Source of the DNA: Syncephalis fuscata S228
Taxonomy: Eukaryota; Fungi; Zoopagomycota
Reading direction: 5' to 3'
Length of the DNA: 64,000 nucleotides
Assembly (NCBI GenBank): GCA_025786725.1
Contig: JAHLTZ010000002.1
Span: forward strand, 931,841-995,840
A model generated the notes under the pieces. The model had not been told where the DNA came from, ran no database searches, and worked only from the letters and a program-made list of their open reading frames with translations. Made by a program: the position numbers and the translations under genes. This document shows positions 51,105 through 60,063 of the stretch, piece by piece; positions within the stretch are counted from its first letter, which is position 1, and every line of letters starts with the position of its first letter.

Positions 51105-52251
51105 TTATTTTCCGCGACCACCGAAGCCAAGGCGGCCTGGACGAGTGCCAAGCGCCAACGCTGTACTAATATCATCCTCGACATCTTCTAAGATAGATGG
51201 GCCTGGTGAAAATATTTTCTCGTGGCTAACTGTCTTTCCTTCGGTTACTGGATCAATTACTGTATGGCCACCGCGCATTAGCTGAGCTGCTCGTGTATCA
51301 AAATGACCTGCAGTTTCGCGAACAGCGTGAACCGTTTTGTCCTGTGCAACACCAGCAAAAGCCGTACCAATCGTTTCTCCTAACAGCGAGGCACCCTTTT
51401 TGGTGATGGCATCGGTGATGGCAGGCGTGCCTATTGTTTTGAGCATGATTGCTCCACCAACAAGTCCACTAACGGCACCACCGATGATGTTGGGAATTAG
51501 ACCAACGGCGGTATCTTTAAAGCGCTGTTCCCGAGTACGTGGGTCAGCGGTGTCGTTGCGTACGCCAATGCCTAAGAATTTACGCTCGATAGCCGTTTGT
51601 GTACGATTCCAAACAACTGTACCGGCCACACCGGCTGCCGTGAAGGCTGGTACCGTTGCACCCATCACGCCAAGTACACCGAGACCGGCGGCAGTAGCAA
51701 CTGCGCCAGATACTAGAGAGGGGGCAAGGACTTTGGCTACATTTTTCATACGACTTGATCGGCGATTTGGCGAGGGAAATAGATCGTTTTCCACGGGTAC
51801 CGACGATGCAGGTGCAAAAGCGGTACCATTAGCGGCAAGAGCGGCGTTTTTTTTTTTTCTTGAAGCTCGGCCACTTCTACCGCTGTTAATGCGCCCACCT
51901 TGAAGCCGGTCGATACAGATCCACCTATTGTATCGGCAACATCGGCCCCCATTTTACCAAGTTGTAAGGCTTGGCCCAGTCCATTACTAATGAAGCCGGT
52001 TACCAAGCTAATGCCAAACTGATTACCAATTTCTTTGGCCTCTTTAACAACTTTCTCCTCCAAAGTAGTATGATTACTCTGGCCAGGCAGATCAATAAAC
52101 ACCGGCTTTCCAGGCAGTGAGTCTACCATAGTTCCATTATGACCTGATGCTAATGTTTACTATCACTGATGGGTACAGGGGAAGCAACAACAGTAGTGGT
52201 CACAGATTGTACTGTTAAAATACTAAATAGACATGACACTGAAAGCAGCAT
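51105..52251 (-). CDS. Secreted Gly/Ala-rich protein with several hydrophobic helices, unknown function; apparent frameshifts at ~52157 and 51847-51858
   Basis: Signal-peptide-like MLLSVSCLFSILTVQSVTTTVVASPVP joins the 127-aa and 229-aa ORFs if one A is restored in each of two A-runs. Confidence 0.6.
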
Positions 52252-54085: not shown

Positions 54086-54922
54086 ATGCAATCTTTTCTT
54101 CTAATTTTTGGAATATTGGCACTGCCATTTTTAGCAAGTTCTTACACTTGGGGGTGGCCTGGAACCAAGAGTAGCCTACTGCTTAATGAGGATTTCAAAA
54201 AACCATTGAATGAAAATATATGGAATTTTGATCTTGGTAATGGTTGCGAACAGAATCTCTGCCAATGGGGAAATGGCGAACAGCAAGTATACACCAAGGC
54301 TGGCATTCAAACAAATGCTGATGGGCACTTGAAAATTGTTGCTCGTCGCGAAAATGGCAAATGGACTTCGGGCAGAATCAATACAAAAAACAAGTTTACA
54401 TTCAAATACGGCCGTATTGATGTGCGCGCCAAATTGCCAACGGCTGATGGTGCTTTCCCAGCGATTTGGATGATGCCTCAAAACAGCACATATGGCACCT
54501 GGCCCAACAGCGGTGAAATTGACATTGCAGAGTACCAGTCTTCATGGACCAAGGACGATAAACGCGCTTCGCTTCAGACGCTACACTTTAAAAATCATCA
54601 TGGTGGAAATGCCATGGCATTTAGTACTTCGAGCGACCCTTCCAAATGGCACACGTACACTGTTATGTGGTCTCCCGATTATATCAAGTTTATGCGCGAC
54701 AATGAGTTCAGCGGAGCCTACACTCGTCCGAAGAATGCAACGCCCGATGCATGGCCATATAATCAGGAATTCTACATAGTTTTAAATCTGGCTATTGAGC
54801 CTTCATGGGGCAGCCGAGTCAAAGCCAACGATGACGTGCACACGCTTGAAATTGACTGGATTCGTGTAAGCGATAGATTGGATGCATCCTCGCTATCCTG
54901 TCGCACGCCCAATTGTCGATAG
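54086..54922 (+). CDS. Secreted GH16 beta-1,3-glucanase (laminarinase-type), intronless
   Basis: Signal peptide, WGNGEQQVY, WTSGRINTK, FKYGRIDVRAKLP, catalytic WPNSGEIDIAE, WHTYTVMW, PYNQEFYIVLNLA. Confidence 0.95.
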   Translation: MQSFLLIFGILALPFLASSYTWGWPGTKSSLLLNEDFKKPLNENIWNFDLGNGCEQNLCQWGNGEQQVYTKAGIQTNADGHLKIVARRENGKWTSGRINTKNKFTFKYGRIDVRAKLPTADGAFPAIWMMPQNSTYGTWPNSGEIDIAEYQSSWTKDDKRASLQTLHFKNHHGGNAMAFSTSSDPSKWHTYTVMWSPDYIKFMRDNEFSGAYTRPKNATPDAWPYNQEFYIVLNLAIEPSWGSRVKANDDVHTLEIDWIRVSDRLDASSLSCRTPNCR

Positions 54923-55965: not shown

Positions 55966-57382
55966 TAACTTCAATAAGCATTTTAGCTTTATTAGTATTT
56001 ACATCTTTATCATACTAGATAAATTAATGATGTAAATATGACAATTAAATACCAGCAACATCTGATTTGTTTAACATAGAAAAAAGCAAGGCATGGCATA
56101 AAAGATGGTGCAGTAATCACAATATATTTTTTATTTCTATTTTAATTAAAAACGGCTTTTTTTGTAGCCATTGATACATTACGATTGATCACATTAGATA
56201 CAAACACAATTGAACTATTCGTTTTAGCAATAATAGACATATATGCAGTGCCTATATTCAAGTAAAATGATCTAATGAATAAATTCTAGTGTTTTTACGT
56301 TATTTATGATCAATAAATCAACAACATCAATACTCGAGTCCAATGCTTCATTATTGGAAATACCACTATGCAACAGCCGATAATTAATAGCAGGAATTAA
56401 TTGGTAGTAATAAGGCCTAGATTAATGACTGGTAGCACAGGGCTAAAAATGAGCAGGTAATTCTTGTAGTTTAAGCGCAATGTAAAGTGGAATGACCAAG
56501 TGAACCAATTAATATACTGCATGCTTTAACAATTGCAGCTAGTTTATGCACAACAATATAGAAATGTAAAAAAAGTACAAGCTCGATTTATTAATGTTAG
56601 CTTGTATCGGTGTTGCGCTGCTTGAAAGAGAAATAAAGTAACTTTTATTGACCAGCTATTAATAAAACTTGTAATCATCTGTGAGGCAAAGAAAATGCAG
56701 TTTGTTGTCAAGATAAAACTAATTGTATAAAAAATTATACTGAGGTTTGTTCAAAGGCAATGCGCTATTTTACAAGTTATGTGCAGTTTGAAAGGATTCA
56801 GGTATTAGGGTCTAGAACGTTTCGGTGAAATCAATAGCAAAAGCACAAAGATACATCGCCCTTGCTTCCGTAGAACCAACCAATAGACTCAGTTTGCGTC
56901 GCATGGTCAAATCATTCACGGCACAGTAACGACTAGTACAAGGATTGCTACCATAGATGTTCTAGACAATTGAGATTATCGCTTCATCTGAGCAAAAACC
57001 AAACAGGCTGAATTAAGGGCCTGACTGCACATTAGCGTGCCATTGGTACATTGATATACGCATGCTTCAAATCATCATGTGCATACGTTTAAAGACTATC
57101 ATTGCATGTATAGAATGCACATTGCAGTTATTTACCTATGTCTGTTAAATTGTCATATCAATGCATTTTATTGGTTTACACTGTATTCAATGGTATATTC
57201 TATAAAATACACCGCTGGTGCTTTAGAATAAATATTAATATAAATAGCTCATAAAATACACACAACTAACCAGCAGTATCATCATCACATTCTGCTTTCT
57301 GCCAAATACTCACTCTACCTACTTTATACTACTATACTCTATCGTTCATTCTACTTATTTGTCTTAACAAATCAATCTCACC

Positions 57383-58793
57383 ATGAAGCTTTCTATTGCC
57401 GTCGTCTGCAGCCTCGCCGTGGCCTTTGTAGCCAGTACAACTATGGTGGATGCTAAGCCAAACCAAGTTCGTCGTGGTATGTTGTAGTTGTAATAGATTT
57501 GATATGTTTACTAACACTATGTTCAACCAACGATGGTATTAGCCGGTAAGTTGCGATTATCGACTCATTGTTCCAGCACTTACCGTATGTCATCCAAATA
57601 ATGGACATGGCAAATATAAGGTAAGTGTTGATTGCACATAGCTATTGGCATAATAACTGATCGTTGTTTTTAATGTAAAATAATATAAAATATATTGCTG
57701 ATACTGATATTCTGTATCTATACTAATAGAAAGTAAGTCATTGTTATTAACTGACATGCGCTAAATATATACCATGCATTTGCATGTTCAATAACTTGTA
57801 TTAATAGCTCGTAAGTGGCATTGTATATTGATTGGCTATGCACTAAATATATATACGCGCACTTTATGGGTTTATAACTTATATTAATAGCTCGTAAGTG
57901 GCATTGTATATTAATTGACTATGCACTAAATACATACCATGCATTTTGTGTGTTTGATGACTTGTATTAATAGTTCGTGAGTTATTATATATTGATTGAC
58001 TATGCACTAAATACATATCACGCACTTTGTGTGTTTATAACTTGTATTAACAGCTAGTAAGTGCATTTTATATTAATTGACTATGCACTAAATATATACC
58101 ATGCACTTTTGTGTGTTTGATGACTTGTATTAATAGCTCGTAAGTGGCATTGTATATTGATTGACTATGCACTAAATACATATCACGCACTTTGTGTGTT
58201 TGATAACTTATATTAATAGCTGGTAAGTGGCACTATATATTGATTGACTATGCACTAAATATATATCACGCATTTTGTTTGTTTGATGACTTGTATTAAT
58301 AGGTCGTGAGTAGTATTATATATTGATTGACTATGCACTAAATACATATCACGCACTTTGTGTGTTTGATGACTTGTATTAATAGCTGGTAAGTGACATT
58401 GTATATTGATTGACTATGCACTAAATATATATCACGCACTTTGTGTGTTTATAACTTGTATTAACAGCTAGTAAGTGGCATTTTATATTGATTGACTATG
58501 CACTAAATACATATCACGCACTTTGTGTGTTTATAACTTGTATTAATAGCTCGTAAGTGGCACTATATGTTGATTGACTATGCACTAAATATATATCACA
58601 CACTTTGTGTGTTTGATGACTTGCATTAATAGCTGGTAAGTGACATTGTATATTGATTGACTATGCACTAAATACATATCACGCACTTTGTGTGTTTATA
58701 ACTTGTATTAACAGCTAGTAAGTAGTATTATATAATGCTAACTTATATGTTAACACATAATATTTTATATATTTATGCATGATTATAGACTAA
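57383..58793 (+). CDS. Small secreted peptide gene built from fourteen 3-nt microexons (predicted 46 aa: MKLSIAVVCSLAVAFVASTTMVDAKPNQVRRAETPLPTPGPATPAN)
   Basis: Exon 1 57383-57476 (signal peptide, phase-1 donor GTATGT). YAG|NNN|GTRAGT microexons at 57543, 57730, 57808, 57891, 57974, 58054, 58137, 58220, 58303, 58386, 58468, 58550, 58633, 58715. Last exon AC-TAA at 58789-58793. Confidence 0.75.
57733..58723 (+). repeat. Tandem array of 12 units of ~80-83 bp, each one intron plus a 3-nt exon
   Basis: Consensus GTAAGTGGCATTGTATATTGATTGACTATGCACTAAATAYATATCACGCACTTTGTGTGTTTGATGACTTGTATTAAYAG-NTN; microexon spacing 83,83,80,83,83,83,83,82,82,83,82. Confidence 0.97.
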
Positions 58794-59477
58794 CCGGTGC
58801 ATTCAAGACATTAGCATTGATAGTATAATTAAACTGCAAGTTACATATATTTTAGGTATATATTTGGCAAGAATCAAGATCATTTGACAACTACGCCATT
58901 CGGTCCATTCATCTACCAAGTCCCAGCCAATGCCCCCGTTTATTCAACCTTTAATCAATGGACACATTATATTATCAACAAGTCTGTATTTGTCTGCACA
59001 TACTCAGCTATGCAAACTTGTAGTAATAAACATATGGTTCCAGCTTAATTATGCTTCATTAAGCTCTTATAGCTATGTTTACATTCTATTCGCTTACAAA
59101 GACTAGCAAACATTAATTAATTAATATATCGACAATAGATTTATTCAAGTGCGTTATGCTAGTGAACAATGTAAACTAAAGTAACTGTAATGCTATTATC
59201 ATTCAAATAACAATTTAGTGTTTGATTATTTACAAATTTACTATAAGTACTAAAATTAAAATATCAATATTTATCAATATATCTTAGTTCATGAGAATGT
59301 AATTAAATTATTTAAAAATATATTTTCCTTATTTTTGTTTGTGCTATTAAACAAATAATGTATAAACAGACTAATAGTCAACATATTGCGTAAATAATGT
59401 TGTATTAAGTTATCAAATTCACGATATAGCTAGCAATATAGTTTATTAATTTAACAGTTCAGCTGCCATTTGTGCTA

Positions 59478-60063
59478 TTATTTTTGGTTTTCTTGTAGAT
59501 GTTTCTGAAATAACTCCAATAAATGTTTAATGCCATCTTTAGCTATAATTGTTGCTGCTTTGCAGCAGCTTTAGTGACAATAGGCACAACAAGCGTGCTG
59601 ACAACAGATCCTGCGGCAAAACCAACAGGGCCAGATAATGCAGTGATACCTGTTGTAACTCCCATGCCAGCTGCGGCACCTATTGTAGAGCTTGTCGCAG
59701 GCGAAGCTAGCTCACCCTTGAACTGAATGGTCTTTTCCTTGATTTTTTTACCAATGCGGCGAAATGTCTCGTAAGCCTTTCTTTTGAACGATGCCATGTC
59801 ATTGGCATTTGGGTCATGAAAAGTATTGGCAGTAGGTAGATGTGACTTGCTGCGCAGCTGACTAGACTCTTCTTCAGCTTTATGACCAATAGTCTTGAAC
59901 ATTTGATCCAACTCGTTTCCAATCGAGCTAACAGCATTGAATAGCTGGGGAATTGTTTGAATTTCAAAACCCTTTGTGAAATAGGAGTTGCTCCTATGAT
60001 GGCAATTGAAGAATGGATAACGAGCAAAACTGCCAGCAACAAAAGACAATTAAAGGGAAGCAT
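59478..60063 (-). CDS. Secreted protein with C-terminal glycine-zipper-like hydrophobic segment; apparent frameshifts at ~59974 and ~59560
   Basis: Signal peptide MLPFNCLLLLAVLLVIHSSIAIIGATP joins the 168-aa ORF; IGAAAGMGVTTGITALSGPVGFAAGSVVSTLVVP. Confidence 0.6.

Follow-up and report, generated by a model that had tools for sequence, protein, structure and literature searches.

Arrays of three-nucleotide exons very likely encode a family of predicted secreted peptides in the fungus Syncephalis fuscata

The genome of Syncephalis fuscata contains a large family of genes for predicted secreted peptides, in which an exon encoding the signal peptide is followed by an array of triplets, each enclosed by splice signals. 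Judging from sequence comparison, it is very likely that these triplet arrays are real and spliced and, as far as such comparison can demonstrate, the microexons are ordered, frame-neutral and under coding constraint. One member had been described from the window, by which is meant the whole 64-kb stretch of S. fuscata DNA that was analysed. This preliminary description had proposed that the mature part of a secreted peptide is spliced from 3-nt exons, and at the level of the family the proposal is now well supported, by sequence evidence only. The layout of this member (57383-59030 of the window), referred to below as the array gene, is as follows:

57239-57246, forward strand: TATA-like promoter element, common to array-bearing and intronless members (from aligned upstream regions)
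57383-57476, forward strand: exon 1 from the ATG, encoding the predicted signal peptide and a short pro-region with RR at its end; phase 1 at the donor
57477-57542, forward strand: intron 1, 66 nt, with GTATGT, a CTAAC branch motif 29 nt before its end, and TAG
57543-57545, forward strand: microexon CCG, homolog of the first 3-nt exon of the paralogs and of the first triplet after exon 1 in the intronless L022
57618-57620, forward strand: degenerate microexon site, acceptor changed from TAG to TAT, donor intact (from comparison with paralogs)
57621-57729, forward strand: fused intron after a 39-nt deletion that removed a 15-nt family exon (..PLAKR pro-peptide piece)
57730-58717, forward strand: 13 three-nt exons with 75-80-nt homologous introns between them, 83-bp unit
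58718-58788, forward strand: last intron, 71 nt, of a type kept across the family
58789-58793, forward strand: start of the terminal exon, two bases (AC) that finish the last codon, then TAA
58794-59030, forward strand: 3' UTR conserved in the family, with AATAAA at 59025

Exon 1 comprises 94 nt from the ATG at 57383 and ends in phase 1 at the donor GTATGT (57477). It is followed by the fourteen AG-NNN-GT sites that had been reported, all with the triplets listed at the time; matches to [CT]AG-NNN-GT[AG]AGT are positioned at 57543, 57730, 57808, 57891, 57974, 58054, 58137, 58220, 58303, 58386, 58468, 58550, 58633 and 58715. Owing to the phase-1 end of exon 1, the codons of the array are split 1+2, taking one base from one exon and two from the next. 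The introns measure 66, 184, 75-80 (twelve introns) and 71 nt, and TRF scores 57745-58734 as a tandem repeat (period 83, 12 copies, 86%), in agreement with the repeat of about 83 bp that had been claimed. As predicted, the stop comes straight after the last acceptor, which ends at 58788, and the same NN-TAA start of the terminal exon was seen in all 16 array genes listed. Local translation returned the 46 residues previously given for the spliced product, in which the signal peptide would be followed by a pro-region with RR at its end and by a 15-residue tail rich in Pro, Thr and Ala. The preliminary description had mentioned neither the codon splitting nor the large gene family, nor the 39-nt deletion and a fifteenth site at 57618-57620. 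The latter reads TAG-NNN-GT in L002, L004, L007 and L016 (L and P numbers denote fetched genome or metagenome loci and public protein models, respectively), and the acceptor change of the array gene is also present in L006. In the array gene the site is probably skipped, or used as a zero-length AG/GT site. Both lesions, the mutated acceptor and the deletion, are frame-neutral. None of the triplets of the array gene ends in T, so that this gene alone gives no stop-avoidance signal, and its putative coding status rests on its intact signals and on the family. Exon 1 has no Pfam match and the array locus contains no long ORF. It is the only array in the window; in the fetched loci, arrays follow the family exon 1.

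Two orphan ORFs with Gly/Ala-rich hydrophobic stretches flank the array gene on the reverse strand (51105-52251 and 59478-60063), neither with a Pfam match above the cut-off. At 54086-54922 on the forward strand lies an intronless gene for a secreted GH16 glycoside hydrolase, with its closest matches in Zoopagales, the best of them in Syncephalis, and then in bacteria. In two other species of the genus, S. plumigaleata (L041) and S. pseudoplumigaleata (L042), the region downstream of the GH16 gene was not syntenic and held no array.

The window contains 18 N3 sites on the forward strand, 14 of them in the array gene, against 0-4 for other spacers or the other strand. The genome-wide motif count that had been proposed as a check gave 4,344 TAG-N3-GTAAGT sites, against about 500 for other spacers (N2, 518; N4, 464; N6, 503) and 307 in a reversed control; CAG-N3-GTAAGT accounts for a further 567 (control 181). 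The concentration of the window's N3 sites in the array gene, together with the genome-wide N3 excess, argues that the array sites are not due to chance. An excess of about 4,000 sites would fit some 200 genes of about 20 exons. Sequence searches were performed with exon 1 or intronless paralogs as queries, and 40 loci were analysed in detail. Of 341 candidates for exon 1 in the S. fuscata genome, 150 were scored as matches; these take in near-identical duplicates and intronless members, and the paralog count is at least 150. The number of 3-nt exons per gene in the family ranges from 7 to 48. The hydrophobic character of exon 1, a predicted signal peptide, is conserved in 17 aligned members. 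An exon-1 profile found 19 proteins in protein collections; the 16 whose source was traced all belong to S. fuscata or one metagenome contig.

Each public model that was checked proved to be an intronless member or a misreading of an array gene. That such genes are missed by gene predictors, as had been claimed, is borne out by P0125, whose model runs into an insert, and by P0127, which reads into intron sequence; both leave the microexons unused. P0130 and P0133 were considered as spliced models and rejected, their genes being intronless. Truncated or frame-broken members also occur (L023, L024, L025, L040 and L005): L023 retains exon 1 and its donor without an array, and in L024 the splice sites have decayed. 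Their sequences are consistent with birth-and-death turnover, and some of the 1-nt losses are possible assembly errors.

Among 258 junctions detected by flank similarity alone, AG is kept in 256 and GT or GC in 257, and a TAA branch-like motif at +34 to +36 is kept in 97-99%. Mean conservation is 0.78 in the flank columns and 0.33-0.52 at the triplet positions. Internal exons were modelled in 17 genes, four doubtful last exons being dropped; 363 of 380 are 3 nt long and the rest 6, 9, 12 or 15 nt, exon sizes thus staying multiples of three although the family introns are full of indels. Stop codons at phase-1 junctions were counted after L024, L025 and L040 had been left out on account of frame breaks and L030 had been cut at a 2-nt exon. 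One stop was found in 363 junctions, against 10.4 +- 2.5 in order shuffles (P 5e-5), and the 12 less related genes alone gave P 1e-4, both values being optimistic, as paralogs and tandem units are not independent. The single stop sits at a penultimate junction. In the phase-2 control there were 26 stops where 27 were expected. The middle base of the triplets is T or C in 81% and G in 5%, compared with 75% and 11% at third codon positions of the intronless members, and the GC content of the triplets is 53% against 27% for the introns. Besides, L037 and L038 are predicted to encode peptides with six Cys, spaced 2-3-8-5-3 and 3-5-7-3-3, a spacing that resembles those of the intronless P0130 (2-3-11-5-3) and L035. 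When the triplets were shuffled, the six-Cys pattern was recovered 0 (L037) and 1 (L038) times in 100,000. For one six-Cys member a fold of three short helices was predicted (pLDDT 84); the peptide had no usable match in Atlas or Foldseek searches.

Intronless members of the family are L022, L031/L032, one gene on L034, L035 and L036. In L022, exon 1 is followed directly by CTG, TCG, 15 nt and GAG, in register with the exons of 3, 3, 15 and 3 nt of L021, L026 and L017, and the gene enters the NN-TAA terminal exon at the exact boundary. The exact joins in intronless members, for which the evidence spans internal exons one to four and the junction with the terminal exon, suggest replacement in place by cDNA. 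About 400 nt of promoter are retained (L022 matches the intron-bearing L023, and L035 matches L037/L038), which led us to reject L022 and L035 as free retrocopies and points to a loss of all introns in place via spliced cDNA. Spliced cDNA would thus occasionally replace a whole array and give rise to an intronless member. No array parent that matches an intronless copy over its whole length was found among the 40 loci. An intronless homolog with the same leader, the PLAKR motif and related UTRs was also found in a more GC-rich organism (L043, ENA ERZ1505404); its stop lies three codons after KR.

Nine SINE/LINE-like inserts of about 350-820 nt were observed, all within intron bodies; therefore, reverse-transcription machinery has been active. 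SINE-like inserts are found in long array introns of L006, L007, L016, L026, L027, L030 and L038. The SINE is tRNA-headed, about 350-420 nt long and bounded by target-site duplications, and is inserted antisense in array introns of different genes at a nearly constant spot about 19 nt after the donor. One insert of 820 nt carries the 3' end of the SINE and looks like a truncated LINE partner.

Splicing, as we propose it, would take out about 15 short introns and leave the 3-nt phase-1 exons joined in genomic order. Short-intron definition would let the spliceosome excise the introns one after another, and the branch point is likely to be the TAA motif at +34 to +36, some 45 nt upstream of the AG. 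No support was obtained for a conserved hairpin between this point and the acceptor (mean z -0.28). The RR at the end of the pro-region is a probable Kex2-type site; the predicted peptides of the paralogs are Pro/Gly/Thr-rich or contain six Cys, after an RR or KR site. As for the origin of their diversity, intron identity is 0.76-0.80 within genes and 0.68 between genes, intron similarity drops with distance along the array, and whole units have been gained and lost between gene duplicates. The growth of the array by tandem duplication of intron and triplet units, as put forward in the preliminary description, is supported by sequence at the family level. Units that diverge by 1-3% in flanks or introns differ at 37-64% of triplet positions. 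Recent whole-gene duplicates show 3 triplet changes in about 490 bases (seven pairs), which argues that the triplets are not mutation hot spots. Variable triplets amid homogenised introns would fit intronic gene conversion and unequal crossing-over. Because the units are frame-neutral and the introns homologous, single triplets could be exchanged: such events would add, delete or swap one triplet at a time, and the peptides would be diversified at the DNA level. Syncephalis is a parasite of Mucorales moulds. From this lifestyle and the family size only, the peptides are likely to be fast-evolving effectors or antagonistic peptides directed against host moulds or microbes.

If the arrays are spliced, the 3-nt exons might still be skipped at random, as has been published both for the nank genes of Tuber and for schistosome MEGs, yielding many isoforms per gene. 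Every exon is frame-neutral, and in the array gene, L002, L004, L016 and L021, which have no T-ending triplet, any skip is stop-free. However, family-wide the products that lack one exon contain stops at the chance rate (10, against 9.9 +- 2.5) while the full chain avoids them, and the six-Cys spacing requires the full ordered chain. Since skip-one stops occur at this rate, we prefer full inclusion to a model in which most of the diversity comes from skipping. The family sequences give no sign of selection to tolerate exon skipping, and random skipping is a possible but doubtful account of the arrays; the two accounts are compatible, and some skipping may occur beside ordered inclusion, the best explanation. 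That the family is real and this copy a pseudogene, or a gene spliced differently (e.g. from exon 1 to later exons), is rather unlikely. It has lost the 15-nt exon, one acceptor is dead and its tail is of low complexity, so that it may be decaying, and the family does include broken members (L005, L024, L025, L040), but the 14 remaining junctions, the promoter, the terminal exon and the poly(A) signal are all intact, neither lesion disturbs the frame, and the reading frame is open in L002 and L006, which have the same deletion.

It is scarcely credible that the gene has just two exons and that the array in its one intron is a non-coding minisatellite, resembling splice sites by chance. The array does score as an 83-bp tandem repeat, and in metagenomes the motif is also matched by ordinary satellites and by CRISPR arrays; these false positives, however, have constant triplets. 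A minisatellite would leave unexplained the invariant AG and GT around a hypervariable triplet, the exon sizes in multiples of three, the frame-specific stop avoidance and the cysteine spacing, and the presence of the triplets in intronless copies, L022 in particular, strongly disfavours it. On the same grounds the earlier assertion that the array is no ordinary satellite holds. Mobile introner-type elements that entered ancestral genes without introns, one at each codon, would account for thousands of similar introns and for the existence of intronless members. This is nevertheless highly improbable, as similarity declines along the array, introns of one gene resemble each other more than those of different genes, all introns are in phase 1 at 3-nt spacing, and whole units are gained or lost between duplicates; moreover, splicing of 3-nt exons would still be needed. 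Splicing of the ordered triplets is therefore retained as the preferred reading.

A scan of metagenomes with a generic three-junction motif gave at least 120 stretches. Poly-GGA matches proved to be CRISPR arrays and constant-triplet matches satellites; L044, L062, L087, L141, L145 and L150 were rejected as CRISPR arrays; TAG-GGA-GTAAGT forms part of their repeat and imitates the motif, by which motif scans can be misled. After removal of both classes, 49 loci with variable triplets remained among the matches listed. Stops in phase 0 are avoided by 39 of these 49 listed loci (12 against 41 after shuffling by column, which is a weaker null), while in the ten low-GC loci listed stops are avoided in phases 0 and 1. 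None of the intron units matches that of Syncephalis at more than 0.62, which suggests independent origins. Phase-0 arrays of 3-nt exons lie directly upstream of HET-domain ORFs in L048, L049, L052 and L119, and in L096, L162 and L059 arrays of 3-nt exons follow NACHT-ankyrin ORFs directly or are found close to them, as in Tuber nank. L128, L063, L131 and seven further low-GC loci have introns of 82-94 nt in DNA of 16-26% GC, and the phase-1 array of L128 precedes a tyrosine-kinase-like ORF; from composition and kinase, our guess is that the hosts of the low-GC loci are arbuscular mycorrhizal fungi. On the reverse strand of L060 (forest soil) a signal-peptide exon ending in phase 0 is followed by at least 17 three-nt exons, apparently an independent version of a secreted-peptide gene. 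Introns related to those of L060, with Tyr/Asp-rich readings, occur in L070, L106, L120, L155 and L158.

With about 4,000 three-base exons in one small genome, exon size would be near its practical limit at scale, and the family offers a direct test bed for how the spliceosome handles consecutive 3-nt exons and in which sequence it does so. It exposes a large repertoire of predicted secreted peptides in a mycoparasite, of which public annotation catches mainly the intronless copies. It also suggests that protein diversity may arise through recombination in introns, with the codon as the unit. The metagenome matches imply similar hidden arrays in many fungal immune-type genes beyond Tuber. We are evenly divided on a broader reading, in which introns act as handles for codon shuffling, intronless genes are fixed through cDNA and such arrays arose independently in fungal non-self genes; it spans the 150 or more secreted peptides and the HET, NACHT-ankyrin and kinase genes of several fungal lineages.

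A search of the literature found no description of this S. fuscata family. The statement that no such array had been described in fungi was nevertheless too strong. The nank (NACHT-ankyrin) genes of Tuber melanosporum were reportedly treated by Iotti et al. in 2012. In the accounts available, these NLR genes contain tens of codon-sized microexons that are alternatively spliced (PMC4986451, PMC3689799, PMC10197012, PMC13449251). As far as those accounts go, the likeness consists in an expanded fungal family, tens of consecutive 3-bp exons and a non-self context, and the nank products are intracellular NLRs with large domains, from an ascomycete, for which alternative splicing is reported. The S. 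fuscata family, in contrast, belongs to the Zoopagomycota and encodes small predicted secreted peptides whose mature part is wholly microexonic; its exons are in phase 1 with split codons and show signs of full ordered inclusion, and NACHT and ankyrin domains are absent from the 46-residue predicted product. In Coprinopsis cinerea, 27 three-nt exons occur in 26 genes, and fungal spliceosomes handle exons of 1-3 nt (PMC12230235). This amounts to about one microexon per gene, compared with up to 47 consecutive ones and about 4,000 per genome in S. fuscata. With introner-like elements the family shares the many near-identical introns in one genome (identity 0.76-0.80 within genes).

Schistosome MEGs have a signal-peptide exon and, after it, 10-20 or more very short exons whose lengths are mostly divisible by three; the exons are mostly of 15 nt (6-81, rarely 3), the introns 0.1-5 kb, and there are 35 genes (PMC10526429). 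The analogy with MEGs that had been drawn stands for the architecture: both concern parasite proteins that are secreted or, in S. fuscata, predicted to be so, with microexons after a signal-peptide exon and difficult annotation, and as to exon number the array gene has 14 microexons and the 380 exons of 17 genes are, after exclusions, all of 3-15 nt. The exon-skipping diversification that the analogy implied found no support, skip-one stops occurring at the chance rate. Besides, 95% of the S. fuscata exons are of 3 nt, the introns are 66-86 nt long barring insertions and mutually homologous, and there are at least 150 genes; no sequence relationship to MEGs was found, nor any homology to MEG proteins among the 16 exon-1 profile matches of traced source. 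The S. fuscata family thus belongs to neither the nank nor the MEG group, alike as their architecture is, and differs from both in cargo, phase, intron homology and scale. What is new is a whole family of predicted secreted peptides, the splitting of codons between exons, and the combination of hypervariable triplets with homogenised introns on either side.
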